Source of the DNA: Ostrea edulis
Taxonomy: Eukaryota
Length of the DNA stretch: 64,000 nt
Direction: 5' to 3'
NCBI RefSeq assembly: GCF_947568905.1
Contig: NC_079168.1
Coordinates: 30,938,001 to 31,002,000 of the forward strand
This document shows positions 14,486 through 37,835 of this stretch, piece by piece. Made by a program: the position numbers and the translations under genes. The notes beneath the pieces were generated by a model, which saw nothing but the letters and a program-made list of their open reading frames with translations, was not told where the DNA came from and did no database searches. How positions within the stretch are numbered: position 1 is the first letter of the stretch; every line of letters starts with the position of its first letter.

Positions 14486-14563
14486 ATGGAAAAGGAAATA
14501 GAAGCATTGAAGTTACAACTCCAACTTAAAGAGAAAGAGAACAGGAGATTAAAAGAACTCCTG
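14486..14563 (+). CDS. MOCS3: MOCS3 exon 1 (coiled-coil N-terminus)
   Basis: [26 protein letters not shown], then GT donor, phase 0. Confidence 0.8.
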
Positions 14564-17500
14564 GTATAGATTTCAATGTTAACGATTGTGATTCTCCACA
14601 TTGTACATACGTCAATAGAGAAAATTCGAATTAAAAAAAAAGCTGTGAGAGAATGCGATTTAGCATTTATTGTGTATATCATTGTGTACAATTTTGTGTC
14701 ATATTCTAACAATAATTCGTTATTCTATCTTGTTATAAAACGCTTTTTTTCTTTGTTTCAAGGGGAAAACCACTTGTCAATCTAATTTTATTATTAAAAT
14801 CATATCAAATCATGCATGCTTTCCTTTGACTAAAGAAAAAAATTCAAGTGTTATTTGTGTCTCAAAGTATTCAGACAAAACTCTTCTATTTCCTCAAAAT
14901 ATGAGCATTGTTTTAATATAATTTTCAAGAATTAGTAATACATCATATTAATGATTGACAAAATGATAAGATGTTTTTTCAGTTGGTGAAATCAATGACA
15001 CAATTTTTTAATGTACAACATTTGATACTAACATGTTGCAGGTGGTCGGAAACTGGCTATCTAGAATACCAGAATTAAAAAAGATAAAATCTTGATGTAT
15101 AAATGTATTTGATTTATTTATCAATGGTCAGAATGATGTAGCAATCGAACATATAAAAGTTAACTTATATTTACCATGTCTTCATAACATTGTGCATTGT
15201 TAACACATTATTGAATATTTTTATAGAAAATTCCAGATCCTGACACTTGCATATCTCATGAAAGACCAGAATTAAGAACATGTCTGACGAATGCAGAAAT
15301 TGGTAGATACAGCAGGCAGTTAATCTTACCTGAGATTGGAGTTCAAGGTACGTCAGCACAAGATATAAGAATTTTGTCCTTCAGCTGTAGTGAGGATAAG
15401 TGTCCCAAGACCTAACCAGATTATTTGAACAAGTAGGACATGTGCATTCAAGTCTCAAGAGGAGTGTGTACAGTGAAACCTGTCTAATCCGACATGCACT
15501 GGAAAACAATTGTTTTGTCGAAATACACAGTGTGTTGAAATAAACAGTGTAAAACAATGTAGCAGGTTGGGCATTTGTATTGTCTGTACTTCATGTTGTG
15601 TTTTGTTTTATTTCATTTCATAGTGGTGACTTCGAAACGACTCAACTACACTATGATTAGAAACTTGAAAATAAACTCACTAGAAATGAAAATAAGATTA
15701 ACAACACATTATGAATTTATTACCAGTATAAATATGACAAATACACACTCCTAAACCCTTGAACTTAGCCTACAAACTATCAAGAAATTCTCCTAACCCA
15801 AAGGTAATATAGTAATTTAGTAAGTAAAAAGGGTATAAGGTCAAAGTGGACAAACAAGCCATGATTCCAGTATAGGAAGATTGGAAGGAGAAGTGAAGCT
15901 AGCAAGGCCAGCTGTCTCGCTCCGACGAATTGTTTGCTGCATGGCTCTATATAGTAACTTGGTCAATAGAAACTGTCATCAAAGTTATTGGCTAAATACA
16001 ATGGGTGTATGATTTACATTGAGATCAAAATTCAGAAATAAATTGATTGATTGTATATTGTTTAACGTTCTTCTTGAGAATTTTTTATGCATATGGAGAC
16101 ATCACCATTGCTGGTGAAGGGCTTCAAGATTTAGGCCTTTGAGCAGGATGGGATCTTTATCGTGCCACACCTGCTGTGACATGGAGCCTCGGTTTTTGTG
16201 GTCTCATCCAAGGGACCGCTCCATTTAGTTGCCTCTTATGACAAGCAAAGGGTACTGAGGACCTATTGTAACCCGGGTCCCCGCAGGAATCGGACGTAAA
16301 TTTAAAGTAAATGTTAAACCGAAACTACGATAAAACAATGAAAATATAAAATTGAGAGTGAAGATAAAAGTTGAAATGTTCATTGAAAATGGATTGTACA
16401 GACCTGTGTGGAATTGGGCATTTTCTTAACCAGAAAGCTTTGAGTTTCATCCCTATTATTTTGAATTTTCAGTTTGTAAGAAATAGCTGAATTGGGCTTT
16501 TTTCACTGTATATTGAATATATAAAAAAAAATCTAAAAAATTTCTTCATCAAAGATTCCTCAAAGAATAAGATTTGTAAGGGGGATTTTTTAAATCTAAT
16601 TTCTTTAATACAGAGCAGTTGAAATTGCTGGTACCTCTGTGCTGGGAGATTTTTTAATCTAATCTCTTTAATACAGGGCAGTTGAAGTTGGCTGGTACCT
16701 CTGTGCTGGTGGTCGGTGCCGGGGGCTTGGGCTGTCCTGCTGGGATTTACCTCGCAGCAGCTGGAGTGGGTGTGTAAAAATGAATTTACTTTGTATCACT
16801 TACTAAGATACCGTATAAGTAGAATTTTTATCGAGACACAAATTTAGCGATTTTCCATCAAAATGGGTTTACATACATTTAGCGAGAGCTAATTCTAGCG
16901 ACTTTATAATTCAAAGGAAAATAACTATTACCTATGATGTTGAATAAATTGCTAGCAATATTCAATTTTAATGATCTCAACACCCTCACTGATAACACTC
17001 AAATTAAAACCTTACTAAAAAGTCTGCTTATACAGTATCACTGTATGATATTCAATTTCATTTGCTTAGCAATCCTCAATGATTGTGTTTCTGTTTTCTT
17101 ATTTAAAATGAATATGAATTCCCTTGTTTTTGATTATCAGTAATTGAAAAAGTGATACAGTAAAACACAGTTACAGTGAACATGCTTATAAATATAATGA
17201 ATTCATGCTTACAGTGAAGTGATCTTCTTGGTAGTTTAAAACATTTGATGAACTTATTGGATAGAACAAATTGTGTTTACAATGAATCTTGTTCATTCCC
17301 AGCAACCCACTATTAGCGTGTTTTACTGTTTACATATCTAGAAGATTTCATGATATGAACATTTCTCACAAATCATTTTCTGTTAAATGTTTTCGCTTTA
17401 TCAGTTCTATCAATCTAGTATCAACTAGTTACTACAGTAGTTTCTCTCATTCTCTTTTCCATCGTCACAAACTACAGTTTTGAGTCAACACACACTCATT

Positions 17501-20500
17501 TAACAGTCCACCTGTATATCAGTTAACGGTTCATCTATATATTTAAGTTAGTTAACAGTTCATCTGTATGTCAGTTGACAGTTCATCTGTATTTTAATCT
17601 ACAGTTCATCTGTATTTTAATCAACTGTTCATCTTTTTATTAGTTAACAGTTCATCTGTATGTTAGTTAACAGTTCATCTGTATGTTAGTTAACAGTTCA
17701 TCTGTATGTTTTAGTTAACAGTTCATCTATATGTTAGTTAACAGTTCATCTGTATGTTTTAGTTAACAGTTCATCTGTATGTTAGTTAACAGTTCATCTG
17801 TATGTTAGTTAACAGTTCATCTGTATGTTAGTTAACAGTTCATCTGTATGTTAGTTAACAGTTCATCTGTATGTTTTAGTTAACAGTTCATCTATATGTT
17901 AGTTAACAGTTCATCTGTACGTTAGTTAACAGTTCATCTGTACGTTAGTTAACAGTTCATCTGTATGTTAGTTAACAGTTCATCTGTATGTTAGTTAACA
18001 GTTCATCTATATGTTAGTTAACAGTTCATCTGTATGTTTTAGTTAACAGTTCATCTGTATGTTAGTTAACAGTTCATCTGTATGTTAGTTAACAGTTCAT
18101 CTGTATGTTAGTTAACAGTTCATCTGTATGTTTTAGTTAACAGTTCATCTGTATGTTAGTTAACAGTTCATCTGTATGTTAGTTAACAGTTCATCTGTAT
18201 GTTTTAGTTAACAGTTCATCTATATGTTAGTTAACAGTTCATCTGTATGTTTTAGTTAACAGTTCATCTGTATGTTAGTTAACAGTTCATCTGTATGTTA
18301 GTTAACAGTTCATCTGTATGTTAGTTAACAGTTCATCTGTATGTTAGTTAACAGTTCATCTGTATGTTAGTTAACAGTCATCTGTATGTTAGTTAACAGT
18401 TTATCTGTATGTTTTAGTTAACAGTTTATCTGTATGTTAGTTAACAGTTTATCTGTACGTTAGTTAACAGTTCATCTGTACGTTAGTTAACAGTTTATCT
18501 GTATGTTAGTTAACAGTTCATCTGTATGTTTTAGTTAACAGTTCATCTGTATGTTAGTTAACAGTTCATCTGTCTGTTTTAGTTAACAGTTTATCTGTAC
18601 GTTAGTTAACAGTTCATCTGTACGTTAGTTAACAGTTCATCTATATGTTAGTTAACAGTTCATCTATATGTTAGTTAACAGTTCATCTATATGTTAGTTA
18701 ACAGTTCATCTGTATGTTTTAGTTAACAGTTCATCTATATGTTAGTTAACAGTTCATCTGTACGTTAGTTAACAGTTCATCTGTATGTTAGTTAACAGTT
18801 CATCTGTATGTTAGTTAACAGTTCATCTATATGTTAGTTAACAGTTCATCTATATGTTAGTTAACAGTTCATCTGTATGTTTTAGTTAACAGTTCATCTG
18901 TATGTTAGTTAACAGTTCATCTGTATGTTTTAGTTAACAGTTCATCTGTATGTCAGATCTCTCTGTCTATTTAGTTTGGATTAATTCATTTTCCCTGAAA
19001 TTTTAGAAACTTAATTTGAAAATTTATAGTATCTGATGAATGGGTTCAGCATTTTATGAGGTAGTTCAGAACAAAATTAGCTGTGGATCTTAAGGATTTT
19101 CCATGTAGTTTTGATTAACACTTTTGAAGATATAGATCTTACACTTTGAAGCATAATGAGATTGGACATTATAGGTGGTGGATTCAAAAACAGTGGGCAT
19201 GGAACTTCACAACATTTTAATATTAAGTTAAAAACATTTTTCACAATTATATACTTACTATGGTGTATAGAGATTCAGAATTCCAAGTGGCATATCTGCG
19301 ACAGTGGTGTGTGTGTGTGTGAATCTTCATAAATATATACAGATTAGGCTCATTGTTTTTCAAATGAGAGGGGGGGGGGGTAAAGCTGATTCTGTGTGCT
19401 TGCATGTATTGATATGGTATGGATTCATTATTTTGTTGGCTGATTTAAGAGGAACGGAGTCTGCTACAACTGAGGGTGATGTAAATTCACCATCACATAT
19501 TTGTCTTTTATTTTTAAGGAAGAATTGGAATCGTAGACTATGATGAGGTGGAGCTGTCAAATTTACATCGTCAGATTCTTCACTCGGAGGGGAAAGTGGG
19601 CATGGCTAAATCTTCCTCAGCAGCTTCAGCATGTACTCAGTAAGTGTTGTACTATTCTCAACAGAAAAAATTGAGGCATTTCTTGAACTAGTAACACTAG
19701 TTTTGAACACCGTATAAAAGTATCTCAAAAGGACATTCCAAGAGTTATTGCCCTTAGAACACTGTTGTTGACCATGAATTCAGGAAAAATAGTTTTTAGA
19801 TATCTTTTAATTTAATATGTACAAATCAAGAAAATAATTTTATTGTTATACCGTACAAGCAGAATTTTTAGCGAGGGATTGATTTTGGAATTATGAGCGA
19901 GAGTGTTGAGATCGTTAAAATTGAATATTGCTAACAATTTATTCCATATCAGAGGTAAATATTTATCTCTCCTGAAATTATAGAATCGCTAAAATTAGCT
20001 TCACAGTCTGCTAAATATATATACCCATTTATATTAAGAATCGCTAAATTTGTGTCTCGCTAAAAATTGCACTTGTACGGTATAAGATTTGTTGGATTTG
20101 CATGCTGACGATGGTGTCTGTATATGTACATGTTATCTGTACTTGTCTTTAATGACAAATAAAACTCATCATCAGCGATAATTAGGTGTGGGATATACTT
20201 TTGTGATAACGGATCTCTACTTAATTCTGTTATACATCAGCAAAGTTTTCAGAAATTTATTATTTCACGGTGGTCATCACACAGCTGCAGGCAAATCTCT
20301 CATAGATAGTGGCCGACCATTTGTCTGACTTTGGTGTGTTTTAACAGACCTTGATTGAAAATTTTGTTTTCAAGGTCACTTTGAACCCCTCACCACCACC
20401 CATCTGACATAAACTAATCACAAGTTTTACTGATATATTCAATTGTCTGCTGCTTGTGTTGAACATCCTTTGCTTTACATGTCAGACATTAATCCAATAT

Positions 20501-23500
20501 TGCAATGTGTACAGCATGTTACGTAGAAGGCTCATTTAAATCACTACAGAAAAAAACTGTCCTGTCTGACATCAACTACTAACCCAGCCTACAATGAACT
20601 TCACAAAACACTTAGGTTTCCATATATAGGCTATAAGCCGACATGTATGTTGCATGTTTTGGAAGTCATTGATTGTAGTTTCTTGGTTTTTTTTGCAGGC
20701 TCAATTCCCTTGTGCAATGTGTGCCCTACCGCATACAGCTTGACAGCTCTAATGCTCTGCAGATCATTAAGCTGTATCCTTGTACATGTGACAGACCTAG
20801 CTGCCTGCAGGATATAGGGATTGGCAAAATTTTTGTCATTTAACATGTCAAACATATTACATGTACATAGGTCTGCAGAGTGTGCGTGAAATGCATTAGT
20901 GCATATGCTGCACACTTGTTCAACAAAGGAAACATGCATTATCCATCATATGTCTATTGCGGAGTATTAGACACAATCTGGAGTGTAACAAATATCTTAT
21001 TGTATCAAAAGTCTGTTTCAATCCAATTTCAATGTATCCATGATCCAAATATTTATAAATAAGACTTGTATTTAGTACGAGTAAATGAATTAAAAGATTT
21101 CATGCAGATCTTGCCATATTGAAAAGGGTATTATCTGTTAGCATTTATATGATTTAACCATTGTCTTACATTCGTTAAGCATTTAGTTCATGCAAATTCA
21201 CATGTAGAATGTATAGTTTCATCAAATTTGAACAAAACTATCTAGTTTTACCATGATGACTGTGCAGTATGATACTGTAGTTTTATTGAGATCATTTAAT
21301 TAAGATGAATCTGTATCCTCCATTATTAGTCCTTGACGATGTGAAGATATGACATTGTTTTGGATGCCAGCGATAACGTGGCCACACGGTACCTGCTGAA
21401 CGATGCCTGCATACTGTCTCAGAAACCGCTGGTGTCGGGTAGTGCCCTCCGATTTGAAGGACAGGTATATGAAGGGTGTCAGTGTCCTGTAAATAGGTGG
21501 GAGTCGAGATTTAAAGATGTTGCCAACGGTTTAAGATTTTATTGAGAAGGGGATTTACTGAACCATGGCAACTGATACAGAAAGAAAACGTGAAGTTTAA
21601 GTTCTCCAATCCCTCCAGAATTTGTATTTGTAATGGAGTTAAGTTCTCCGATATCTCCAGAATTTGTATTTGTAATGGAGTCCTCCGATATCTCCAGAAT
21701 TCGTATTTGTAATGGAGTCCTCCGATCTCTCCAGAATTTGCATTTGTAATGGAGTTCTCCAATCTCTCCAGAATTCACATTTGTAATGGTAGAAGAAAAC
21801 ACAAATACACTGCAATTCTAAGAGATAATCTTGATGGATGAGTATTACAGTATTTCTGTGACATTACAACCGACTCTAGAAAATAAAGGCCGGTGAAAAA
21901 CTAGGGTGCTGATGACGTCTGTTATCCCTCCATCCCCTTAGATCCACCATTTAGATGTTTTCATTTTCCACCATTTAGATGTTTTCATTTTCCATCATTT
22001 AGATGTTGTCATTTTCATTGTTCATATATTTAATATATAGAGAATTGAAGTCTTCATGATGTAAAAATTGCAATGATTTGGGGGGGAAAATGAATAGATG
22101 AAGATGGACAACCATATTGACCGGTCAATATCACCAAATGAATTTTTCTTAGTTAATATACTAGGTCATACTAACATTTACAGATGTCATTATGAGGTGT
22201 CTTAGAATAGCATTAATTTACATTACACATTTCCTGCGTCACTGTGCCCTTCGTAGATCAATCTATCGAGGGAATTGATTATCCTGTTTTATAGAGCGTT
22301 CATTGTCGGGTCAGTGTTTAGAAATTCTGTGTCGTATAGCTGTATGGTATACGGAGTGAATTTGATGGACGAGTATGCTCTCTGTCACATTTCTTACTGA
22401 TACTGTAAAACCGGGCGTGTCATTTGAAGGTGTACCGATATATCCAAAATAGAAGCCACAGTGAGATCGATATATAGACTAATACACAAGTTATATGCAA
22501 GTTTTACATCCAAGATGTTTAAAAAGGATATTTTTGTCATTGAGGTTAAGCACATATATCGATTCCTTTATCAATTTCTTGTACAGTACAACAGCTCATC
22601 ATTTGTCAGCCTGCAATACCAGAGAAATAAGTACAAGAGAGTGAGATAGGGCTTGTTTTTTACTGCGTGTTTATAAGTATAAGAGAGTGAGATAGGACTT
22701 GTTTTTTACTGCGTGTTTATAAGTATAAGAGAGTGAGATAGGACTTGTTTTTTACTGCGTGTTTATAAGTATAAGAGAGTGAGAAAGGACTTGTTTTTTA
22801 CTGCGTGTTTATAAGTATAAGAGAGTGAGATAGAGCTTGTTTTTTACTGCGTGTTTATAAGTATAAGAGAGTGAGAAAGGACTTGTTTTTTACTGCGTGT
22901 TTATAAGTATAAGAGAGTGAGAAAGGACTTGTTTTTTACTGCGTGTTTATAAGTATAAGAGAGTGAGATAGGACTTGTTTTTTACTGCGTGTTTATAAGT
23001 ATAAGAGAGTGAGAAAGGACTTGTTTTTTACTGCGTGTTTATAAGTATAAGAGAGTGAGATAGAGCTTGTTTTTTACTGCGTGTTTATAAGTATAAGAGA
23101 GTGAGAAAGGACTTGTTTTTTACTGCGTGTTTATAAGTATAAGAGAGTGAGATAGAGCTTGTTTTTTACTGTGTGTTTATAAGTATAAGAGAGTGAGATA
23201 GAGCTTGTTTTTTACTGCGTGTTTATAAGTATAAGAGAGTGAGAAAGGACTTGTTTCTTACTGCGTGTTTATAAGTATAAGAGAGTGAGAAAGGACTTGT
23301 TTTTTACTGCGTGTTTATAAGTATAAGAGAGTGAGATAGGACTTGTTTTTTACTGCGTGTTTATAAGTATAAGAGAGTGAGATAGGACTTGTTTTTTACT
23401 GCGTGTTTATAAGTATAAGAGAGTGAGAAAGGACTTGTTTTTACTGCGTGTTTATAAGTATAAGAGAGTGAGATAGAGCTTGTTTTTTACTGCGTGTTTA

Positions 23501-26500
23501 TAAGTATAAGAGAGTGAGATAGAGCTTGTTTTTTACTGCGTGTTTATAAGTATAAGAGAGTGAGAAAGGACTTGTTTTTTACTGCATGTTTATAAGTATA
23601 AGAGAGTGAGAAAGGACTTGTTTTTTACTGCGTGTTTATAAGTATAAGAGAGTGAGATAGAGCTTGTTTTTTACTGCGTGTTTATAAGTATAAGAGAGTG
23701 AGATAGAGCTTGTTTTTTACTGCGTGTTTATAAGTATAAGAGAGTGAGAAAGGACTTGTTTTTTACTGCATGTTTATAAGTATAAGAGAGTGAGAAAGGA
23801 CTTGTTTTTTACTGCGTGTTTATAAGTATAAGAGAGTGAGATAGGACTTGTTTTTACTGCGTGTTTATGATTTTCTATTTTCATTGAATGAATTATATGT
23901 CAGTATATACTTTTTAAAACTTTACAGCCTATAGTATTCTATGTTTTAAAACTTTACAGCCAATAGTATTCTATGTTTATAAAACTTTACAGCCAATTGT
24001 ATTCTATATTTTATAACTTTACAGCCCATAGTATTTGATACTATTTAAATTTTACAGCCAATAGTATTTTATGTTTTAAAACTTTACAGCCAATAGTATT
24101 CTATATTTTAAAACTTTACAGCCAATAGTATTCTATGTTTTAAAACTTTACAGCCAATAGTATTCTATATTTTAAAACTTTACAGCCAATAGTATTCGAT
24201 ACTTTTTTAAATGGAGAGTCCTCAACAAGTTCTTCCGATGATCTCGCAAAATGCATATTATCTCAAGAGCACAGAATACACATTTTGTTATGAAACAATT
24301 TCATGTCACAAGACAGCAGACATGTAAATTTCAGTGTTTTCATGATAAAAATTTCAGTTGTACATAGAGGGTTCCTGTTAGTCAGTTGTTACGGGGATTC
24401 TCATTCCAGTGTGGGGTTTGTATGAATGATAATTACATTATGGTATCACCAATCCAACTAGTTTAGTGTGGGGCCTGCTCCCCCATCCTCAAAATCAAGT
24501 ACTAGTTTCTTGAATTTGAAATTCAAAATTTACAACTATAAAGTTATATATACTTGTATTTCATGATGAACGCTGTAGAAGTATATCCATATTTAGACTG
24601 GTTTATTCGCCTGCCACAGCTGTTGGTTTTGTCACACAGTTTTCGTAATTTGAATTCCTGAAAATGTTGGAATTTGTCTTAGCTAGGCCAAAAAGAAAAT
24701 GAATCAAAAATATCCCATCATGCAATATACATGCAAGTTAAAATCCAAGAGCTTCTAAGGGCTTTGTCCTTTAAACCCCCAATCAGCGAGGTCCCTCAGT
24801 TTTGAACGCAATTTGAATTTCAGAAAAAATTTTACCCAGGCAAAAGTTGAGGAGCTGGATCTGGACCACAGCAGGACACAGTTTTCATTATCGAATCACC
24901 AAAAAATGACTGCAATATATCTTTGCCAGGCAAAAAAACAAAACAAAAACAGTGTGCAATGTAATGAATCTTTGCTAAAACCCTGGAGCTTTCCTAGGAC
25001 GTTGTTTTTATTTTGATTTACTTGCCTTTGGTTTTTCATGTTTGACAGAGTGGTATGACATTGACTAGTATTATTGGACCAGAAAAACATTGTTAATGAA
25101 AGGGGCATGAACTGAAAATTTGCAGATTTTTCCCTCCACATTTTTAATATAATCAAGGTATTTCTAATGATCAGCAAAAATATTTGAATACCAGTTGTTG
25201 GGTTGCAAGTGAGATACAGCACTCACAATTCTTAGTCATGTTTTTGTTTACACGTGACAAACACTGGGAGCTGTTTATCTCCAGAATCAACTTGTAAATT
25301 GAAAAAAACTCTGCTTTAACGAAACTTTTACTAGTATATTTAATGTATGTAAATGAAAACATGGCATGAGCCGTGTTTATATAACAAAGAATTGTGAGCG
25401 CTGTATCTCTATGATACATTGCATTGTAATTCAAATTTTTGCTGACCATCAGAAATACCTTCGTTAAGTATTGTAAACATTAAAATTGCAAAAATAAAAT
25501 TTGAACATTTTTAGTTCAAATCAAGTCCATGCCCCTTTAAGTGTGTACATGTGAAAAGTTGCCCCATTTGATGTAGAGGTTTATGAATTGGTAATTAATT
25601 TATGTGCTGTAGCACTGTAATTAGTCGGTAGGTAGAATGGAATCTGAAAACTTTCAAATTTTATCATATTTTTAGATTTTGTTTTGATATCATGTATTCT
25701 CTTTGACAGCTGACGGTATATGGTTACAAAGATGGGCCTTGCTACAGATGCCTTTACCCCAAGCCCCCTCCCCCAGAAACGGTCACAAACTGTTCTGATG
25801 GTGGGGTTCTAGGAGTCAGTAAGTGATTAGACTCAGTGGAAGATTACTACAATTTTCGTAGTATGTTAGAATCAGAAAACTACTCAGACAATCGTGTACT
25901 TATATTGTGGATTTAAACTGAAGTAGGGTTCACACATTAGATTAGGTCAATGTTCCATGATTTTGAATCTATCACCAAAGTATTAATTTTTCACCAGGCC
26001 TGGGGGTTATAAAACTTTTTAGAGCAAATTTTCATACTCAAACTCAAACTTTGTGCTCTAAATTGTACTCATACTCAAAAGTGAAGGAGGTAAAACTTTC
26101 ATAAAATAATTCTCATACTCAAATGGTGTACATGCTCAAGTTGTTTTGGGGTATGCTTTGGAGCTTGCTCAGAGTTGTACTCAAAACAAACATGACCGAG
26201 TTTGCATATGAGTACGATAAGTTTTATTACCTCCAGGCCAGATTTCAATGTTAGTATAACTACAGCACATTTTACTATTTTGTTTGATACTGTTGTAAAA
26301 TGATATTGTATTCCTGTATCCTGTTTAAAATTTTTGTTTCAACCATGTCAAGTTACAGTGGAAGTACAATGAATACAGAATTCAAAAAGGGTTTAACAAC
26401 CAATTATCTTTTTTTTTCTTTGAAAATTTAATAGTATTAGCACTGTATATATTGTATTGTATTACACAACTTGTGCTATTGATGATGAATGGCAAAATTA

Positions 26501-29500
26501 ATTTGGTACAGTTTGTGCGGTCAAGAATACATGTACACATTCCTCTGATTTAAAGGGGCATTAGCTGTCATTTTATTCACCAAAAATTGAATTCAATGAA
26601 ATTTGATTGCTCTATAATATATATTTTATTAATAACACCAGTATTTAAATATTTCAAACACTTTTAACCTCAAAACAGGCACATGAATATGTGCATTTTG
26701 GTGATTAAATAATTATTGTCTTACAAGTTTATAATTCTTCCTTACATATTTCTTTACTCTAAAAGTGGTTATCTAACATAGTTTTATTAGGTTTCTGTTC
26801 TTTTTGTACAAAATAAATGTTTTTTATTAGTCTTTAATATATATTCCCATGCCATTGAGAGATTTTGAGAGAAAAAAATGGTTTCACAGCTAATGCCCCT
26901 TTACAGTTATATTTGGCAGTGATTTTATGTAACCTATTGTTCCTTTAGTACCAGGGATCATCGGAAGCATGCAGGCGCTGGAGGCCATTAAAATAGCCTG
27001 TGGAATGGAGTGTATCCTTTCTGGAAAGGAAGCGTGGATCTGAGTGCAATTGACTCGGAGACAACTTTAGTTCTGTACTATAATGACAGAGATCTCAGTA
27101 CCTTTAAAAGTCAGGAACACCGGATAGAAAATTCTTATACTTTTGATGTTTGTAGGAATTTATAATAAAAATATTCACAGGTATCATTTTGTAGGGTAAG
27201 ATTAATGTAGGTAGGGGAGGGGAATGAACTGTATTTTCAAGACTTCAATATGAATACATATCAGATTCATACATGAATCAGATTCGAATGTGGATAGTGC
27301 ATCGTGGCTTGGATTTATCAAAAAGAATCTCAAATTGGAGTTTTCCTTTATTTGCATAAATAGTCAAGATTTTAGTAAATTCCCAAGTTTTAACTGAATT
27401 TCTTTTCCGAGAAATTCAGGCCAGGCCTGGATTTCTCGAAATAAACTTATGAAGTCAAAACTTGGACTTAAGTCTGAGATTTTACTCAAATTTTGACTAC
27501 TCAAATAGAAGAAAACTTAACTTTGAGATTTTTTTTAGAAATCCAGGCTAGGTACCTCAGGTTCTGCATGCTGTATACACTGAACATTGATTACATATTT
27601 ACCTACTCTGTTGTAACAATTACCATACACCATTAATCTTAACGGTCTAGTCTCCTTCTGGGTGACATCATGCTCATCACGACACAATGACACGTTTAAA
27701 TAACAGATTCCCTGACAGTTATGTCCCATCAACATGCCTTGTGTCAAAATGAACATAAAAAACATGATCTACCTCGTTAATCAGGAAATATTAATGAAAT
27801 ATTAATCGGTTGAAGACCTGCATTTTTATTCTACATGCGTGTAGGCCATGCAGATCTGCACATTGATATTAATCTTTTTACTCTCTCACTTTTCAACATT
27901 AGTTTTTGTAATGTTTACTATGATATGTCATTTCCACACATATTTTTGCAGTTTAAATTTTACATTGTAGTAATATTACCAAACCTTTTATATATTATTT
28001 GTAGAAATGAGATAGAATGCAAGTGTATGTATGTACGTGAAATGTCATTAAAACACACACTGGTATTATGGTATTGACAAATGCCATGTACGTATGTCTT
28101 TAATAAGAAAAATATAACTTAAATCTTGCACACAAACACTTGCTGAATTGATTTTCCAGTGACCTTGACCTTTATATTTAATCTTGAAAATATAGGAATT
28201 TTAAAAGATCTTTATACAAAGTACCAATCCTAAAAGTTTCACAAAAATTGGAATTCAAAATGAATGCAAATTAAATCTTGACAATGTCCTTCTATAGTGA
28301 CCGGTAACTTTCATGTTGAATGTTGAAAACTAAACTAAATCCTACATCTATAATGAATATCAACAGGTGCTTTACCTGTGATTTTTAAGCATCTGTTGCA
28401 TCATCATTACATTTAGCATCTGTTGCATCATCATTACAATTAGCATCTGTTGCTATTTGGAGTATATGTGTGATTCTAAATGTACACATTTGTGAATTCT
28501 TTATAACACCAAACATCTGAGAGCTGAACCAACAAAAACACAACGAAACAAATGTACAACCAAAGAAGAAAATTTTAAGGGGATAACAAATCATGCAGTT
28601 TTGCATTTGACATACTAAACACCCTCTTAGACTTGTTTTCCTCAACTTTAGCTTTATACACCCAAGACCCATTTCACAAAAAGCTTACAACTGAGATCAA
28701 AATTTAGAAACACTCTAACTTCCATCTCTTGCAGATTTTTTGAATTTGTATGATATTCCATGGTTGACATATATCTTGCATACATATCTGTGTATTCGAT
28801 TGAAAGACGAAAAGGGAATTTTTTATCATTATAACCATTAGATATTTTGAGAAGAGGACCATTGTTCAATACTACATTATCATAATAGTTTCATTTGCGT
28901 ACTTCAATAGCCCACCATTTTACATGTGTGTACATCTTCTGTTCTTGACAACACATATCTTAGTGTCCATTTTTCAGATTTTTAAGTGCCCAAGGCTGTC
29001 ATTGGGGTGAATATAGTCAGCTATTCATGATTGTGCATCTCCTTTTTTATCTCGTAAATGATGAGACAAAAATTGTTTTTCTTAACATATATAGCCTCAT
29101 TTTGCCAAAAAATGCTTTTGTTTGACGGTCAAGAAGGGATCTTTAGAACCATCAAACTGCGACCAAAACAGCCCAAATGCAGAGTTTGTGGGGACTCACC
29201 AGATATCACAGAATTGATTGATTATCAGCAGTTTTGTGGGTCACGGGCAGACGATAAGGTACTTGGCACTTTTATGATTTGGGAAGATGTAACTGTCTGA
29301 CAAATTATGTATTAGTGGTCGACGAGACTTGCGCTTATAGTCAACAATTGCAATGGAAAATATATCAATCTAAAGGGAAAGCACAGATTCATGTCATCAT
29401 GTGTTGGGATTAAATTTCTCTAAATAAAAACAGATTTTGCTACCATTGTAAGACCAGTGTTGAAGATGGAAAAACATTTTTTACTGGATTGTCCTTTATA

Positions 29501-32500
29501 CAAACATAATTTATATAAAAAAGTATTCAAAAATATCATACGATTATCCTGTATCTTGTTTACTGAATCCTCTTGATCTTGTATCTTCAAAGAAATTTCA
29601 AAATATTGTACATATCCACCATTTTTCATCCATATCAAAATTTTCTCTGGTGTAATATTTACTCCTCCTTTTATCAGACATTGATTTTTAATAGTTTTAA
29701 ATGATAATAATTAGCTACTTGCAACAAATGAATTCAGTGAATATGTATTTTATGTAAAGTAATGAATTATCACTTCAGTTCCATTTATCTGAATTGCCAA
29801 TGAATTTTCACACTGTGGTGACAATTTAATTTTTTATATAGAAAACAAAAACTTGGGATAATTTAAATTTTGTGAGGTTTGTGATAATTAAATTTTGTTT
29901 ATATTTTAGGAAAAGTCATTGAACCTGCTTGGAAAAGAGGAGCGAATAAGCGTACAGGTAGACATAAAAATTCAGGAAATTATCACAAAGTATGCCAATG
30001 TGAAAAAACTGCCCCATACAGGAATTTTTCTAATTTCTTTTACATCAAGAAGAAAAAGTTTTAGATATCCTTAAAGATTTCCTCAATGTATTGAATGACC
30101 TAACAGTTGAATTGATTTGCTTAATTTATCAGGAATAACTGTCTGTGTTTCCTTTTCTTATTGATCAATTACTCAACCTCTGAGCTTTATGGATCTATAA
30201 GTACTGTATAAGCAATAATGTGTTGCTTTTTATGTGCTTTATTGCTGTGGTTACATTACTGGTGCTAAGACTGAATAACAACATTTCTAACACAGGCAAA
30301 ATAAGAAGTTACGACACATTGTGTTGATCTTCGTTATAGCCCTCCGTGAAACAATACAATTGTTTGTCAGTCCACCCACTAACATCAATTTTAAAATAGC
30401 TCCTAACACTTCATAAAACATGATCAAATATGTCATTTTCCATGTGTCATAATGTTTGTGAAACCCCTTACAACTTGTCTTATCACCTTTACGTACTCAG
30501 AAGGAAGTTTCCTACCACCTGTTTGTGGGGAAATCTTGTCGCCAAACAGACAGCTTTCAATTAGCAGGAATATCGCATTCAGGACCACTTCAGCTTTTAT
30601 TCTATGTTTTATTATATTTCCTGTGGGAGCATTTCTTAGTTAGCAGGAATATCACAGTTAGGACTCATTTTATTTTATTATATATTTCTTGTGGGAGGGG
30701 AAGGAATTCTATTTGTACAGAGGAGCCTGACACTGTGATACTCCTTGTCTATTTACTTATGTTTCGTTTCTACGGTGACCTATCGGTCAAACGGTCAAAA
30801 TCTCCAGAGTGTGCTCGGTTCACAAGGTATAGGGCAAAATAGCCCTTTCACAGGTATCAATGATAAGAAAACTATTGTAAGTCTAGATCGCCTTTCAAAT
30901 TCCTTGCACTGGAAATTACAACTTTAAAAAAAATTGATTGTTAACAACCACAATCCATGAGTGTATTTTACTTTATATTGGGAGGTTTTTGCCTCATGTT
31001 AATTGCTTTTGCTCCAAACCATGGAAAGCACACTTGCCCTTTCCCCGTAGGCAACCATTTACAGTTCCTGTTCATCACTACAATAATAGTTCCACTGCAT
31101 GAGTTCACCAAAAGATAGGTATGATGATGCCCTTAGCATGCAGAATATCATCCCTGAATAAATCTGCTATTCATTATACAGTAAAACACAGTTATAGCAA
31201 ACTCCCAGAGCCAGTGAAAAACAGTTTGTTATAACCAAACTTCATTATACAGTAAAACACAGTTATAGCAAACTCCCAAAGTCAGCGAAAAACAGTCTGT
31301 ATTACACATTAAAACACAGTTATAGCAAACTCCCAGAGCCAGCGAAAAACGGTCTGTATTTAACAGTAAAACACAATTATAGCAAACTCCCAGAGCCAGC
31401 AAAAAACAGTCTGATATAACCAAACTTCATTATACAGTAAAACACAGTTATAGCAAACTCCCAGAGTCATTGAAAAATGGTCTGTATTATACAGTAAAAC
31501 ACAGTTATAGCAAACTCCCAGAGCCAGCAAAAAACAGTCTGTTATAACCAAACTTCATTATACAGTAAAACACAGTTATAGCAAACTCCCAGGGCCAGTG
31601 AAAAACAGTCTGTATTATACAGTAAAACACAGTTATAGCAAACTCCCAGACCCAGCGAAAAACAATCTGTTATAACCAAACTTCATTATACAGTAAAACA
31701 CAGTTATAGCAAACTCCCACAGCCAGCGAAAAATGGTCTGTATTTAACAGTAAAACACAGTTATAGCAAACTCCCACAGCCAGCGAAAAACAGTCTGTAT
31801 TATACAGTAAAACACAGTTATAGCAAACTCCCACAGCCAGCAAAAAACAGTCTGTTATAACCAAACTTCATTATACAGTAAAACACAGTTATAGCAAACT
31901 CCCAGGGCCAGTGAAAAACAGTCTGTATTATACAGTAAAACACAGTTATAGCAAACTCCCAGACCCAGCGAAAAACAATCTGTTATAACCAAACTTCATT
32001 ATACAGTAAAACACAGTTATAGCAAACTCCCACAGCCAGCGAAAAATGGTCTGTATTTAACAGTAAAACACAGTTATAGCAAACTCCCAGAGCCAGCGAA
32101 AAACAGTCTGTATTATACAGTGAAACACAGTTATAGCAAACTTCCAGGGCCAGTGAAAAACGGTCTGTATTTAACAGTAAAACACAGTTATAGCAAACTC
32201 CCAGAGTCATTGAAAAATGGTCTGTATTATACAGTAAAACACAGTTATAGCAAACTCGCAGAGCTAGTGAAAAACGGTCTGTATTTAACAGTAAAACACA
32301 GTAATAGCAAACTCCCAGAGCCAGCGAAAAACGGTCTGTATTTAACAGTAAAACACAATTATAGCAAACTCCCAGAGCCAGCAAAAAACAGTCTGATATA
32401 ACCAAATTTCATTATACAGTAAAACACAATTATAGCAAACTCCCAGAGCTAGTGAAAAACGGTCTGTATTTAACAGTAAAACACAGTAATAGCAAACTCC

Positions 32501-35500
32501 CAGAGCCAGCGAAAAACGGTCTGTATTTAACAGTAAAACACAATTATAGCAAACTCCTAGAGCCAGCAAAAAACAGTCTGATATAACCAAATTTCATTAT
32601 ACAGTAAAACACAATTATAGCAAACTCCCAGAGCCATCGAAAAACGGTCTGTATTATACAGTAAAACACAGGTATAGCAAACTCCCAGAGCCAGTGAAAA
32701 ACAGTTTGTTATAACCAAACTTCATTATACAGTAAAACACAGTTATAGCAAACTCCCAGACCCAGCGAAAAACAGTCTGTATTTAACAGTAAAACACAGT
32801 TATAGCAAACTCCCAGAGCCATCGAAAAACGGTCTGTATTTAACAGTAAAACACAGTTATAGCAAACTCCCAGAGCCAGCGAAAAACAATCTGTTATAAC
32901 CAAACTTCATTATACAGTAAAACACAGTTATAGCAAACTCACACAGCCAGCGAAAAATGGTCTGTATTTAACAGTAAAACACAGTTATAGCAAACTCCCA
33001 GAGCCAGCAAAAAACAGTCTGTATTATACAGTAAAACACAGTTATAGCAAACTCCCAGGGCCAGTGAAAAACGGTCTGTATTTAACAGTAAAACACAGTT
33101 ATAGCAAACTCCCAGAGCCAGCAAAAAACAGTGTGTTAAAATCAAACTTCATTATACAGTAAAATACAGTAATAGCAAACTCCCAGAGCCAGCGAAAAAT
33201 GGTCTGTATTTAACAGTAAAACACAGTTATAGCAAACTCCCAGAGCCAGCGAAAAACAGTCTGTATTATACAGTAAAACACAGTTATAGCAAACTCCCAG
33301 AGCCAGCGAAAAACAGTCTGTTAAAATCAAACTTCATTATACAGTAATAGCAAACTCCCAGAGCCAGCGAAAAATGGTCTGTATTATACAGTAAAACACA
33401 GTTATAGCAAACTCCCACAGCCAGCGAAAAACAGTCTGTTGTAACCAAACTTCATTATACAGTAATACACAATTATAGCAAACTCCCAGACCCAGCGAAA
33501 AACAATCTGTTATAACCAAACTTCATTATACAGTAAAGCAGTTATAGCAAACTCCCAGAGCCAGCGAAAAATGGTCTGTATTTAACAGTAAAACACAGTT
33601 ATAGCAAACTCCCAGACCCAGCGAAAAACGGTCTGTATTTAACAGTAAAACACAGTTATAGCAAACTCCCAGACCCAGCGAAAAACAGTCTGTATTATAC
33701 AGTAAAACACAGTTATAGCAAACTCCCAGACCCAGCGAAAAACAGTCTGTATTTAACAGTAAAACACAGTTATAGCAAACTCCCAGACCCAGCGAAAAAC
33801 AGTCTGTATTATACAGTAAAACACAGTTATAGCAAACTCCCAGACCCAGCGAAAAGCAGTCTGTATTATACAGTAAAACACAGTTATAGCAAACTTCCAG
33901 AGCCAGCGAAAAACAGTTTGTTATAAGCAGTCTTTGTTATATTGAGTTAGAATTTTGTTATTTTGGAATATTTCCACAAATATATACCCCCCCCCCCCTC
34001 CCTGTTTTGTTTTCTCTCCCCTTTTAAGAATGTTACATAGTTCCTTTTGTTTGCTTAATGGAAAGCAAATCTACCAACCAATAAAAAAATTCTTATTTTC
34101 ATGATTCAGACTGTAGTATCTTACTTTTAGCTGCATCGGTCTGTCATTTGGCCGCAGACATCTGAAGTTTGGACATTATTCTAACACACACCCTCCCTTT
34201 CTGTTCTGAATTTTTATTTTGAAGTGATAATTTCTCTGAAATGTGTGCATTCCCTGTCTATCCCATCCCAATTATTGATTTATGTAATTGCATGTCTCAC
34301 GCTTTTCATAAGCTTATAGAGATTGACCTTCTACCGGTATAATATTTTAGCAACTGTACCATAGTTTAAATTCATCTTGGAAATAATTTCTAACAGAAAG
34401 AAGTTGTCTATTAAATGTTGTGTTCTTGATTTACAGGAATATAAACAGATTCTGGACAATGGACAAAAGCATGTGTTAATTGACGTGAGAATGCAGGTGG
34501 AAATGGAGATATGTCAGCTGCCCACTGATAATTTCAGTATCCTTATTTCCATGTCTTTGAAGTGTACTATAAATATTAAGGGTCAATATGTACTAGACTC
34601 TTATTCATGGTCATTTATTTTGAGCCATTCATTTGTTTTCTTCTTTCCACTACCAGTCATCTAGCTGCAATAATGTAACCCTCTCCAACTTTTTTTTCTC
34701 TCCTGAAAACGTCAGGAAAAAAAAAATCAGAGAGGACTACATTATTGAAGCTACCAGTCATCATGTGAAATGCTTAATGATATTTTTAGACATTTTCATG
34801 AATTTTTGTGGTTGATGTTTTTCATTTGGGAAATAGCATGCAGCTACTGTTGATCATTAGATTTTGTGAGGGATTATTTTTCATGGATTTTCAAGCCACA
34901 ACAAAATACACAATCTACAGTACTTGGCCATCAATCTAATTAAAACCAGATCTTCAATCCGCTCCTCTATTGGCCATGTCGCCTTCAATGCGACATGGCC
35001 AATAGAGGAGCAGATTGAAGATCTGGTTTTAATCAGATTGCTTAGCCATGAGTATGTTCCCAAAGAAAATGTCCACTATATATTTCATGGAAAACCATAT
35101 ATTTTCAAAATTTTCGCTTGGAGCTAATTTTTCCTCTATTTGGATGGAATAAGCAACATTTTATTCAGAATTATCTTAAATAACTGTTATAATTTTTTAA
35201 AAAAATGTTATGATGCAATATTGCAGAGAGATAACATTTTATTCATAATGTTGATTTTTTTAATTCCAAAATTACACATACTTATAGAAAGAGCAAGTAC
35301 TCTCAAATCAAACTTTATAGATAGAGTTTCTAAGGCTGAACTGATCAAATTTCCTGATAGCTGGCAGAAGATGACTACAGTAGTCTTGAATTTTGCATGA
35401 CCCCCAACACAGAGTTCACATGACCTCAGAGTAATGGGAAAAGGATCTGAGAGTAGATCTCATTGATAATTTGATAGAGGTTCCATTTTCCATAGGGAAC

Positions 35501-37166
35501 GTTGCATGGCGAGGTCTGTGTGCCATTGAACAAAGCCAATCTCTCAGATACAATTTAATTGGAGGACTGGCAGTGAGGAGGAGGGCGTGTCGTGGAGTTC
35601 TACAATTTGTAGAGATTACAGTTAAGGGCTGTAAGGTTGTTGTACCAGGAAAGAACAGAGGCCAGAGAGCCAACTCCATGAAATTTTATGGGTGAACTAG
35701 TGATCCAGTTCAGGTGTATAGAACCACAAAACCACCAAGCCTTACTGTATAGAACCACAGAACCACCAAGCCTGGCTGTATAGACCCAGAGAACCACCAA
35801 GCCTGGCTGTATAGAACCACAGAATCATGCCTGGCTGTATAGACCCACAGAACCACCAAGCCTGGCTGTATAGACCCACAGAAACACCAAGCCTGGCTGT
35901 ATAGAACCACATAACCACCAAGCCTGGCTGTATAGACCCACAGAACCACCAAGCCTGGCTGTATAGAACCACAGAATCATGTCTGGCTGTATAGATCCAC
36001 AGAACCACCAAGCCTGGCTGTATAGAACCACAGAACCACCAAGCCTGGCTGTATAGAACCACAGAATCATGCCTGTCTGTATAGACCCACAGAACCACCA
36101 AGCCTGGCTGTATAGACCCACAGAAACACCAAACCTGGCTGTTTAGAACCACATAACCACCAAGCCTGGCTGTATAGACCCACAGAACCACCAAGCCTGA
36201 CTGTATAGAACCACAGAATCATGCCTGGCTGTATAGACCCACAGAACCACTAAGCCTGGCTGTATAGACCCACAGAACCACCAAGCCTGGCTGTATAGAA
36301 CCACAGAACCACCAAGCCTGGCTGTATAGAACCACAGAATCATGCCTGGCTGTATAGAACCACATAACCACCAAGCGTGGCCGTATAGACCCACAAAACT
36401 ACCAAGCCTGACTGTATAGAACCACATAACCACCAAGCCTGACTGTATGGACCCACAGAACCACCAAGCCTGGCTGCATAGACCCACAAAACTACCAAGC
36501 TTGGCTATATAGGCCCAAAAAGTGTGTTTTTACAACAAAAAAATTAAATTCACCCCCTTCTAACTTCCAAATAATGCCGTATACTACGAAAATTAACCGA
36601 AAAAGTAATGGTTGGTTGCAGATTTATGATATATTATCAAGACGAAATTTTACCTACTCCCAACCACAATATTCATGGCAGGGGCGGATCCAGGATTTTT
36701 TTTAAAAGGGAGGGAGTGTTCTACCATTAATTTTGGTTTTCAGGTGTATATTTCACCCTCAAAATGCATTATTTTTAACTCTTTTTGAAAGCAAATTTTT
36801 TGACGAAAAAAAGGGGGGATCCAACCCCCCACAACCCCCCTCCGCTCTGGATCCGCCACTGATTAACTCCCCCTTTTCTACGACGACTCATATTGTCTCC
36901 CTTCCTTAACCTTATTCTTAGATTTGCCTGTGAGTTGTGTGGACAGAGACGATAGTCTAGCTAGCCTGAAGGACCACATCCAAACAAAATCAGCTGGGGA
37001 CGAGGACCTTCCCGTTTACGTCGTGTGCAGACGAGGAAATGATTCACAGGTTGCTGTCCAGAAACTTAAAAACCATTTAAAATCTTACTCCATTCAGTTA
37101 AAAGACATTACTGGTGGACTTTATGCTTGGGCAAAACATATAGACACAAACTTTCCAGTGTATTGA
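14486..37166 (+). CDS. MOCS3: Adenylyltransferase and sulfurtransferase MOCS3 (UBA4), 12 exons, 1335 nt, 444 aa
   Basis: Exons 14486-14563, 15227-15347, 16677-16769, 19519-19639, 20699-20773, 21347-21464, 25710-25818, 26949-27011, 29095-29258, 29910-29957, 34437-34536, 36922-37166; all phases join. Motifs [46 protein letters not shown] and rhodanese CRRGND; ends FPVY*. Confidence 0.96.
15227..15347 (+). CDS. MOCS3: MOCS3 exon 2
   Basis: ttttatAG|[40 protein letters not shown](G)|GTACGT. Confidence 0.9.
16043..16285 (-). mobile_element. SINE-like interspersed repeat with (ATCA)n-type tail
   Basis: ttgattgattg tail followed by a GC-richer body (catcaccattgctggtgaagggct...atcgtgccacacctgctgtgacatgg...). 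Recognised as a common bivalve repeat from recall. Confidence 0.55.
16677..16769 (+). CDS. MOCS3: MOCS3 exon 3 (ATP-binding glycine loop)
   Basis: [31 protein letters not shown](G). Confidence 0.95.
17520..18952. repeat. 23/25-bp minisatellite, about 60 copies, MOCS3 intron 3
   Basis: (gttagttaacagttcatctgtat)n with +tt variants. Confidence 0.97.
19519..19639 (+). CDS. MOCS3: MOCS3 exon 4
   Basis: [40 protein letters not shown](Q)|GTAAGT. Confidence 0.95.
19851..20080. mobile_element. 230-bp Tc1/mariner-type MITE
   Basis: TIRs ccgtacaagcagaatttttagcgag / ctcgctaaaaattgcacttgtacgg, flanked by TA on both sides. Confidence 0.75.
20699..20773 (+). CDS. MOCS3: MOCS3 exon 5 (followed by U12 intron)
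   Basis: [24 protein letters not shown](L)|GTATCCTT. Confidence 0.92.
20774..21346 (+). other. U12-type (GT-AG) intron 5 of MOCS3
   Basis: 5'SS GTATCCTT; branch TCCTTGAC at 21330-21337, about 10 nt before the AG; no polypyrimidine tract. Confidence 0.88.
21347..21464 (+). CDS. MOCS3: MOCS3 exon 6
   Basis: [39 protein letters not shown]; preceded by the TCCTTGAC branch motif. Confidence 0.95.
21605..21790. repeat. 37-bp tandem repeat, 5 copies
   Basis: ctccagaatt...tttgtaatgg core at 21613, 21655, 21692, 21729 and 21766. Confidence 0.9.
22630..23868. repeat. 46-bp minisatellite, about 27 copies, MOCS3 intron 6
   Basis: (ttataagtataagagagtgagataggacttgttttttactgcgtgt)n. Confidence 0.97.
23910..24205. 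repeat. About 32-bp tandem repeat, about 9 copies
   Basis: (ttttaaaactttacagccaatagtattctatg)n. Confidence 0.9.
25710..25818 (+). CDS. MOCS3: MOCS3 exon 7
   Basis: [36 protein letters not shown]|GTAAGT. Confidence 0.95.
26949..27011 (+). CDS. MOCS3: MOCS3 exon 8 (followed by U12 intron)
   Basis: [21 protein letters not shown]|GTATCCTTT. Confidence 0.93.
27012..29094 (+). other. U12-type (GT-AG) intron 8 of MOCS3
   Basis: 5'SS GTATCCTTT; branch TTCTTAAC at 29079-29086, about 9 nt before the end of the AG. Confidence 0.85.
29095..29258 (+). CDS. MOCS3: MOCS3 exon 9
   Basis: [55 protein letters not shown]; preceded by TTCTTAAC. Confidence 0.93.
29910..29957 (+). CDS. MOCS3: MOCS3 exon 10
   Basis: ttttAG|[16 protein letters not shown]|GT. 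Confidence 0.9.
31176..33925. repeat. 57/71-bp satellite, about 45 units, MOCS3 intron 10; MITE-terminus derived
   Basis: Units tatacagtaaaacacagttatagcaaactcccagagccagcgaaaaacagtctgtat (57 bp) and a 71-bp variant ending gttataaccaaacttcat. Confidence 0.95.
34437..34536 (+). CDS. MOCS3: MOCS3 exon 11 (followed by U12 intron)
   Basis: [33 protein letters not shown]|GTATCCTT. Confidence 0.93.
34932..35040. mobile_element. 109-bp hairpin element with 9-bp TSD (MULE-like MITE)
   Basis: About 50-bp arms with a 7-nt loop; TSD CTTGGCCAT/CTTAGCCAT. Same TIR family as 48696-48774. Confidence 0.82.
35715..36500. repeat. 31/28-bp minisatellite, about 25 copies, MOCS3 intron 11
   Basis: (ctgtatagaaccacagaaccaccaagcctgg)n. 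Confidence 0.95.
36922..37166 (+). CDS. MOCS3: MOCS3 exon 12 (rhodanese domain end)
   Basis: [11 protein letters not shown]...[15 protein letters not shown]...[20 protein letters not shown]; preceded by TTCCTTAAC. Confidence 0.95.
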
Positions 37167-37835
37167 TTAAAGTGAGAAAAACAAAAACTAAAAACACCAA
37201 CGCAATTGGCTCAAGCTTCCATCTTTATTTCATAAATCTTTGCCAAACAGAATATACTGGGGTGCAGTGTTGCTCGGGTGAACAGTTTTTTCCTGGCATC
37301 ACAGATGATCATAATGCATGATAGAAATGCCTTTTTAAAAGTGCAGGTCGATACATATATCACAAAGTACCAGAGTAGGATACACACTGTCACAGTACCA
37401 TACAGGTGGAGGATTTCTAGGTCATCAGGCATCAAAGGGAAAAAAACCTGCAGTGAAAAAAAAGCATTTAATTTTCAGTGTGATATCGCAAAAGACAGAT
37501 AAACTGATAATTTATTTCTATCTTATGTAATTGATTAGTACTAAGTACGTATGTTATAACAGTCCTAATTTACTACCGTCAGTTGCGTCATTTTCAATCC
37601 TCATTACAACATAGAAAGACTAGACTTCACGATGTACAAAGAAAGCATGACATCACTAACATGACGTAATACCACTGACGTTGTACAAAGACAGCATGAA
37701 ATCACTAACATGACGTAATAACCACTGACGTAACATTGTATTTCCATTTATAGATTAATAGTCATGGAATAAATTTTTTTTTACCACATTGAACAAATCA
37801 CGACAAATAAACAAAGGTTAAAAATACAACGAATG

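Follow-up and report, generated by a model that had tools for sequence, protein, structure and literature searches.

U12-type GT-AG introns are typified by a rigid donor, /GTATCCTT, and by a TCCTTRAY branch site 10-13 nt from the 3' splice site, together with a weak or absent pyrimidine tract and the presence of U11, U12, U4atac and U6atac in the host genome. Genes usually carry one U12 intron; about 50 human genes have two and few have three, the known human genes with several being mostly voltage-gated ion-channel genes, while biosynthetic genes are almost without U12 introns (PMC3584512). MIDB holds, for human and for mouse each, 50 genes with two minor introns and 3 with three (Olthof et al. 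2019, PMC6717393), and U12 introns co-occur in the same genes above chance (PMC7367187).

Three introns of the MOCS3/UBA4 gene of the oyster Ostrea edulis match this description in donor, branch site and branch-site spacing, and the oyster shares the weak or absent pyrimidine tract and the four minor snRNAs as well. Compared with typical U12-type introns we see no difference in kind; the oddity is that there are three in one gene, and that the gene is commonly classed under cofactor biosynthesis, whereas the known human genes with several minor introns mostly encode voltage-gated ion channels. Like those genes, oyster MOCS3 displays non-random clustering of minor introns within one gene, conserved over distant species. 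The case is real and conserved, but the kind of feature is already known; it is no oyster novelty and reveals no new mechanism.

The window is the whole stretch of DNA that was analysed, 64 kb of Ostrea edulis NC_079168.1, and coordinates below are positions within it unless stated otherwise. When the predicted exons are joined and translated, the MOCS3/UBA4 coding region occupies 14486-37166 on the + strand as 12 exons with an open frame of 444 aa. Pfam searches were run with each exon as a separate query, and the exons are as follows.

14486-14563, + strand: MOCS3 exon 1, from the translated 12-exon model
15227-15347, + strand: MOCS3 exon 2, from the translated 12-exon model
16677-16769, + strand: MOCS3 exon 3, Pfam ThiF match
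19519-19639, + strand: MOCS3 exon 4, Pfam ThiF match
20699-20773, + strand: MOCS3 exon 5, from the translated 12-exon model
21347-21464, + strand: MOCS3 exon 6, Pfam ThiF match
25710-25818, + strand: MOCS3 exon 7, Pfam ThiF match
26949-27011, + strand: MOCS3 exon 8, Pfam ThiF match
29095-29258, + strand: MOCS3 exon 9, from the translated 12-exon model
29910-29957, + strand: MOCS3 exon 10, from the translated 12-exon model
34437-34536, + strand: MOCS3 exon 11, from the translated 12-exon model
36922-37166, + strand: MOCS3 exon 12, stop included, Pfam Rhodanese match

Exons 3, 4, 6, 7 and 8 match the ThiF profile in order, over profile positions 15-205, which gives an N-terminal ThiF/MoeB-type adenylation domain, and exon 12 matches Rhodanese, barely over the cut-off, as a C-terminal rhodanese domain. 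The rhodanese active-site Cys loop (CRRGNDS) is found in the oyster translation and in all orthologues, and the oyster translation also has CYRC and CRVC motifs. By local alignment the closest named proteins are the MOCS3 of Saccostrea echinata (86% identity) and of Crassostrea virginica (82%), and identity to the Lingula, urchin, shark and fugu proteins is 56-63%. The predicted product is a MOCS3/UBA4 adenylyltransferase-sulfurtransferase. In the 895-Mb genome, a search finds exon 12 once, and there is therefore no second copy of the gene and no retrocopy.

The gene spans 22.7 kb here against 9.5 kb in C. virginica, and much of the oyster span is due to minisatellite arrays. These arrays occupy introns 3, 6, 10 and 11 (17500-18953, 22627-23868, 31178-33921 and 35715-36512), with units of 23, 46, 57/185 and 31 nt respectively and array lengths of 0.8-2.7 kb. 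A 63-nt tandem duplication at 16580-16709 crosses the boundary of intron 2 and exon 3, so that there are two copies of the acceptor (ctttaatacag) together with the initial ~30 nt of exon 3, and the copy farther upstream might act as a decoy 3' splice site. Farther upstream, a tRNA-like stretch near 13270 was considered and no tRNA call was made.

The introns that concern us are the fifth, eighth and eleventh.

20774-21346, + strand: MOCS3 intron 5, 573 nt, phase 2, U12-type GT-AG by its signals, donor GTATCCTTG, branch site TCCTTGAC at 21330-21337
27012-29094, + strand: MOCS3 intron 8, 2083 nt, phase 1, U12-type GT-AG by its signals, donor GTATCCTTT, branch site TTCTTAAC at 29079-29086
34537-36921, + strand: MOCS3 intron 11, 2385 nt, phase 1, U12-type GT-AG by its signals, donor GTATCCTTA, branch site TTCCTTAAC at 36902-36910

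All three begin with the same 8 nt, GTATCCTT. As a crude stand-in for intronIC we scored donors by the number of matches to RTATCCTT, n/8: introns 5, 8 and 11 reach 8/8 and the other eight introns 3-5/8, with ordinary donors such as GTAAGT, GTACGT, GTGTGT and others. Against TCCTTRAY, the branch sites score 8/8 in intron 5 (TCCTTGAC), 7/8 in intron 8 (TTCTTAAC) and 8/8 in intron 11, where the motif at 36903 is TCCTTAAC with a T just before it. From the branch A to the first exon base it is 11, 10 and 13 nt in introns 5, 8 and 11, the expected spacing for U12 introns being about 10-20 nt, and a loose form of the motif, T[CT]CTTRAY, stands at that spacing upstream of just 0.19% of the window's AG dinucleotides. 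The 3' end of intron 5, gacgatgtgaag, has a pyrimidine fraction of 0.53 and is without a pyrimidine tract; that of intron 11 is pyrimidine-rich (0.82).

We dropped the raw count of GTATCCTT as evidence. The 8-mer occurs exactly three times in the window on both strands, all on the + strand and at 20774, 27012 and 34537, and shuffles of the window yield a mean of 2.03 copies, so that three is not above chance. The three copies carry weight because each of them opens an intron directly after an exon, and all within a single model with an open 444-aa frame.

These results bear out most of what a sequence-only reading of this DNA had reported. It had claimed three U12 introns in one MOCS3/UBA4 gene, and donors at 8/8, branch sites at 7-8/8 and domains matched exon by exon all agree; the shared donor start it described is indeed present at the three positions given above, and the span it marked, 20774-36921, runs from the first base of intron 5 to the last base of intron 11. 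Its observation that intron 5 is without a polypyrimidine tract is borne out by the composition, and its claim that the exon phases are compatible by the uninterrupted frame of the 12-exon join. The placing of the branch motif 9-12 nt before the AG was roughly right, given the distances measured here. Its premise that a single U12 intron per host gene is the rule accords with both surveys (PMC3584512, PMC6717393).

Some further features of introns 10 and 11 should be recorded. The 3' end of intron 10 contains a U12-like branch motif, TTCTTGAT, at 34423-34436, 8 nt upstream of the exon, and its donor is plainly U2-type (GTAGAC); the motif beside such a donor means that a branch motif by itself is not diagnostic. 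Intron 11 holds the tandem array of 31-nt units at 35715-36512, and also a near-perfect inverted repeat of 54 nt with a 1-nt spacer at 34932-35040, a MITE-like hairpin in appearance.

The oyster genome encodes the machinery that such introns would use. Each minor snRNA has one match over its Rfam gathering score in the genome: U12 at 127 bits, U6atac at 94, U11 at 93 and U4atac at 83. Direct reading shows intact segments for pairing with the branch site and the donor, namely U12 GTAAGGAAAAT, U11 AAAAGGGC (5' end) and U6atac AAGGAGAGAAGG. From the presence of these snRNAs and the intron signals, which are direct observations, we infer that the minor spliceosome is actually used here: U11 and U6atac would recognise the rigid donor /GTATCCTT, and U12 would pair with the TCCTTRAY branch site near the 3' splice site.

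A word search with exon 12 and an exon-12 search of a representative library led to full-length named proteins and their genomic loci; the word search also returned genomic ORF fragments from other animals, several of which spell the branch site in the read-through upstream of the exon. The annotated proteins were spliced-mapped exactly onto their own loci and the introns placed on a joint protein alignment, so that the junctions of the named species derive from automated NCBI annotations. The named bilaterian orthologues are those of Crassostrea virginica, Lingula anatina, Strongylocentrotus purpuratus, Hemiscyllium ocellatum (epaulette shark) and Takifugu rubripes; an octocoral (Xenia) and a sponge (Oscarella) are listed with them.

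Column 209, phase 2 (intron 5), Ostrea edulis, C. virginica and Lingula: GTATCCTT...AG
Column 209, phase 2 (intron 5), sea urchin: ATATCCTTT...TCCTTAAT...AC
Column 209, phase 2 (intron 5), shark: ATATCCTTT...TTCTTAAC...AA, 83 nt
Column 209, phase 2 (intron 5), fugu: GTATCCTG...TCCTTGAT...AT
Column 209, phase 2 (intron 5), sponge Oscarella: GTAAAC, 49 nt, U2-type
Column 209, phase 2 (intron 5), octocoral Xenia: no intron
Column 314, phase 1 (intron 8), Ostrea edulis, C. virginica, Lingula, sea urchin, fugu and Xenia: GTATCCTT
Column 314, phase 1 (intron 8), shark: GTATCTTT, with a perfect TCCTTAAC
Column 314, phase 1 (intron 8), Oscarella: U2-type
Column 422, phase 1 (intron 11), all five named bilaterians: GTATCCTT
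Column 422, phase 1 (intron 11), Xenia: donor GTATGT, branch motif CCTTAAT
Column 422, phase 1 (intron 11), Oscarella: U2-type

U12-like introns stand at columns and phases 209/2, 314/1 and 422/1 in all five (5/5) named bilaterian orthologues, which is the outcome of the comparison of intron positions that the sequence-only reading had put forward. Across the six bilaterian genes the donor scores are bimodal, the 18 introns at the U12 positions scoring 7-8/8 and the 51 others 6/8 or less. In the wider gene structure, C. virginica, Lingula, shark and fugu all have 10 of the oyster gene's 11 introns at the same column and phase, the first intron being offset by a few alignment columns between phyla, and the sea urchin has 9 of those 10, with intron 10 missing. 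The branch site of intron 5 is weaker in C. virginica (TCCTGAAT). Among other bivalves, contigs L005, L006 and L009 carry the same signals in those introns that they cover; intron 8 is U12-like in L006 and L009, and L005 covers its acceptor only, with TTCTTAAC.

A compact-genome invertebrate (L007/L008, ENA ERZ28675667) has a MOCS3 orthologue with exons 2-12 in about 2.7 kb. Its intron 5 position is occupied by a ~100-nt AT-AC U12 intron, ATATCCTTT...AC, and the introns at the positions of 8 and 11 are of U2 type. An additional intron splits the equivalent of exon 12. With this gene included, the end dinucleotides of the U12-like intron 5 are GT-AG, AT-AC (urchin and L007), AT-AA (shark) and GT-AT (fugu).

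Taken together, this evidence makes it very probable that introns 5, 8 and 11 are genuine, inherited U12-type GT-AG introns, removed by the minor spliceosome, which were already U12-type in the bilaterian ancestor. One could hold instead that they are ordinary U2-type GT-AG introns with U12-like donor and branch sequences arisen by chance, since GT-AG ends, found on all three, are open to U2 as well, and the 3' end of intron 11 is pyrimidine-rich (0.82). Such an account must accommodate three exact GTATCCTT donors combined with correctly spaced TCCTTRAY motifs, for which the joint chance is ~1e-8 or lower. U2AF requires a pyrimidine tract, and intron 5 is without one. AT-AC and AT-AA ends are characteristic of U12 introns, and the orthologous intron 5 has AT-AA ends in shark and reads ATATCCTTT...AC in both sea urchin and L007. 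We consider chance resemblance highly improbable. A gain or clustering of the three introns specific to molluscs, or to the oyster, was plausible only while the intronless human MOCS3 was the sole reference; it is refuted by U12-like introns at the same positions and phases in brachiopod, echinoderm, shark and teleost, and it now has next to no chance of being right.

The three introns would thus be inherited rather than newly gained, U12-type at the same positions in the last common ancestor of bilaterians, with the type then kept in molluscs, brachiopods, echinoderms and fishes. Because U12-like introns occupy the same positions in brachiopod, urchin, shark and teleost, the three-U12 structure is at least bilaterian-ancestral; on this positional homology, a direct result of the alignment, the predicted architecture is older than the protostome-deuterostome split. 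Intron 8, with its U12 donor in the octocoral, was probably U12-type already in the cnidarian-bilaterian ancestor. All three positions are also present in Oscarella, and are U2-type there; in this one sponge species the U2-type state may reflect conversion from U12, or U12-type introns may never have been there. In some lineages, we infer, the type has changed in direction from U12: intron 5 would have altered its subtype, and a U2-type look would have been acquired by one octocoral intron, all three in the sponge and two in L007.

In the human lineage all three introns would have gone at once, through replacement by a retrogene. MOCS3 belongs to the 25 human 'orphan retrogenes', intronless genes that have lost their multi-exon parent (Ciomborowska et al. 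2013, PMC3548309), in keeping with the sequence-only reading, which had taken the human gene to be intronless. Human MOCS3 encodes the orthologous protein, with ThiF adenylyltransferase and rhodanese sulfurtransferase parts, as a single-exon retrocopy, while oyster, brachiopod, urchin, shark and fugu have the parental structure of 12-13 exons with three U12 introns. That reading had also suggested that the structure is ancestral and was lost in vertebrates by retroposition. Its ancestry and the human retrogene hold up; the loss is not vertebrate-wide, as shark and fugu keep all three introns, and since a teleost keeps the parental structure, the retrogene replacement came later than the branching of ray-finned fishes.

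The MOCS3 protein activates URM1 and MOCS2A. The triple arrangement could be a selected throttle, in which slow or regulated minor splicing limits MOCS3 and hence URM1-dependent tRNA wobble thiolation and Moco synthesis. Several observations are congenial to this: the U12 type has been kept at three sites in lineages more than 500 My apart, retention of any of the three introns leads to an early stop (the case of intron 5 can be read directly from the sequence), U12 introns cluster in genes beyond chance (PMC7367187), and reviews hold that they may regulate gene sets (PMC3584512). Conservation of type, however, needs no selection for slowness, U12 introns generally being lost slowly, and conversion or loss is apparent in the sponge, the octocoral, the invertebrate L007 and the human retrogene. 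Such changes in several lineages make the three-U12 arrangement arguably dispensable, and we regard selection for a throttle as unlikely. That minor splicing is rate-limiting for tRNA thiolation or Moco synthesis, which the sequence-only reading had put forward as a possibility, is speculation. A broader version would have the three introns in non-tetrapod animals as a maintained gate, tying sulfur-relay output (URM1 thiolation and Moco) to minor-spliceosome activity, with the human-lineage retrogene as an escape from it; we give this slightly less credence again, and if it were true, MOCS3 would offer a natural comparison, with and without, for the purpose of U12 introns. Simple inheritance of three U12 introns remains our preferred account.

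None of the sequencing runs that contain the last exon and 3' UTR is on record as RNA. In four small runs from 2017 (X5-X8), 65-78% of the words from the last exon and 3' UTR (36922-37800) are present; reads of X5-X7 placed on 25650-31100 yield dispersed-repeat pieces in introns only, with no contig over exons 7-10. These four may be 3'-tag RNA or reduced-representation libraries, and if they are 3'-tag libraries, the gene is expressed and its junctions could not be displayed by them. A further run, X4, is genomic DNA over the same interval, with introns and exons covered alike. Word searches with full-length proteins did not have Ostrea edulis' own annotated MOCS3 protein among their matches. 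They did include an oyster protein, P0277, of 446 aa and 83% identity, which supports the junctions indirectly, its exons being joined without indel at the three U12 sites; its longest contig is only 1665 nt, and it is presumably cDNA-derived for that reason.

Our literature search found no paper linking MOCS3, UBA4 or CNX5 to U12 or minor introns, and MOCS3 is missing from one supplement to the intronIC/IAOD paper; this search covered the literature, and the three introns may well already stand in U12 intron databases. The sequence-only reading had cautioned that its observation would not be novel if the introns were already catalogued in orthologues, and that caution applies, as public orthologue annotations already contain these junctions. 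MOCS3 cannot figure in human or mouse minor-intron lists because the mammalian gene is intronless.

Very few genes carry three minor introns (three in human, three in mouse), and MOCS3 is one across most of Bilateria, a state hidden when viewed from mammals, whose gene is an intronless retrocopy. The family offers a compact, well-aligned case of U12 intron evolution, with long retention of type at three sites. Within it, intron 5 illustrates the switching of end dinucleotides (GT-AG, AT-AC, AT-AA and GT-AT), the octocoral gene an apparent U12-to-U2 conversion with a U12-like branch site left over, and the human-lineage gene wholesale loss of U12 introns via a retrogene.

MOCS3 should also serve for teaching or testing, and annotation pipelines could be checked against it; one of the oyster annotations seemingly mis-joins exactly at a U12 intron. 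The annotated protein of Saccostrea echinata (P0286) has 8 added residues (ITFLTLCI) exactly at the intron 5 junction, and this insert is probably a mis-joined U12 intron 5 in an automated annotation. Among the cnidarian data, Xenia sp. L012 (GCA_021976095.1) has a 585-aa MOCS3-like protein in which the last three exons are repeated past a 7-kb gap with non-canonical ends, and this looks like a duplication in assembly or annotation rather than a real longer protein.
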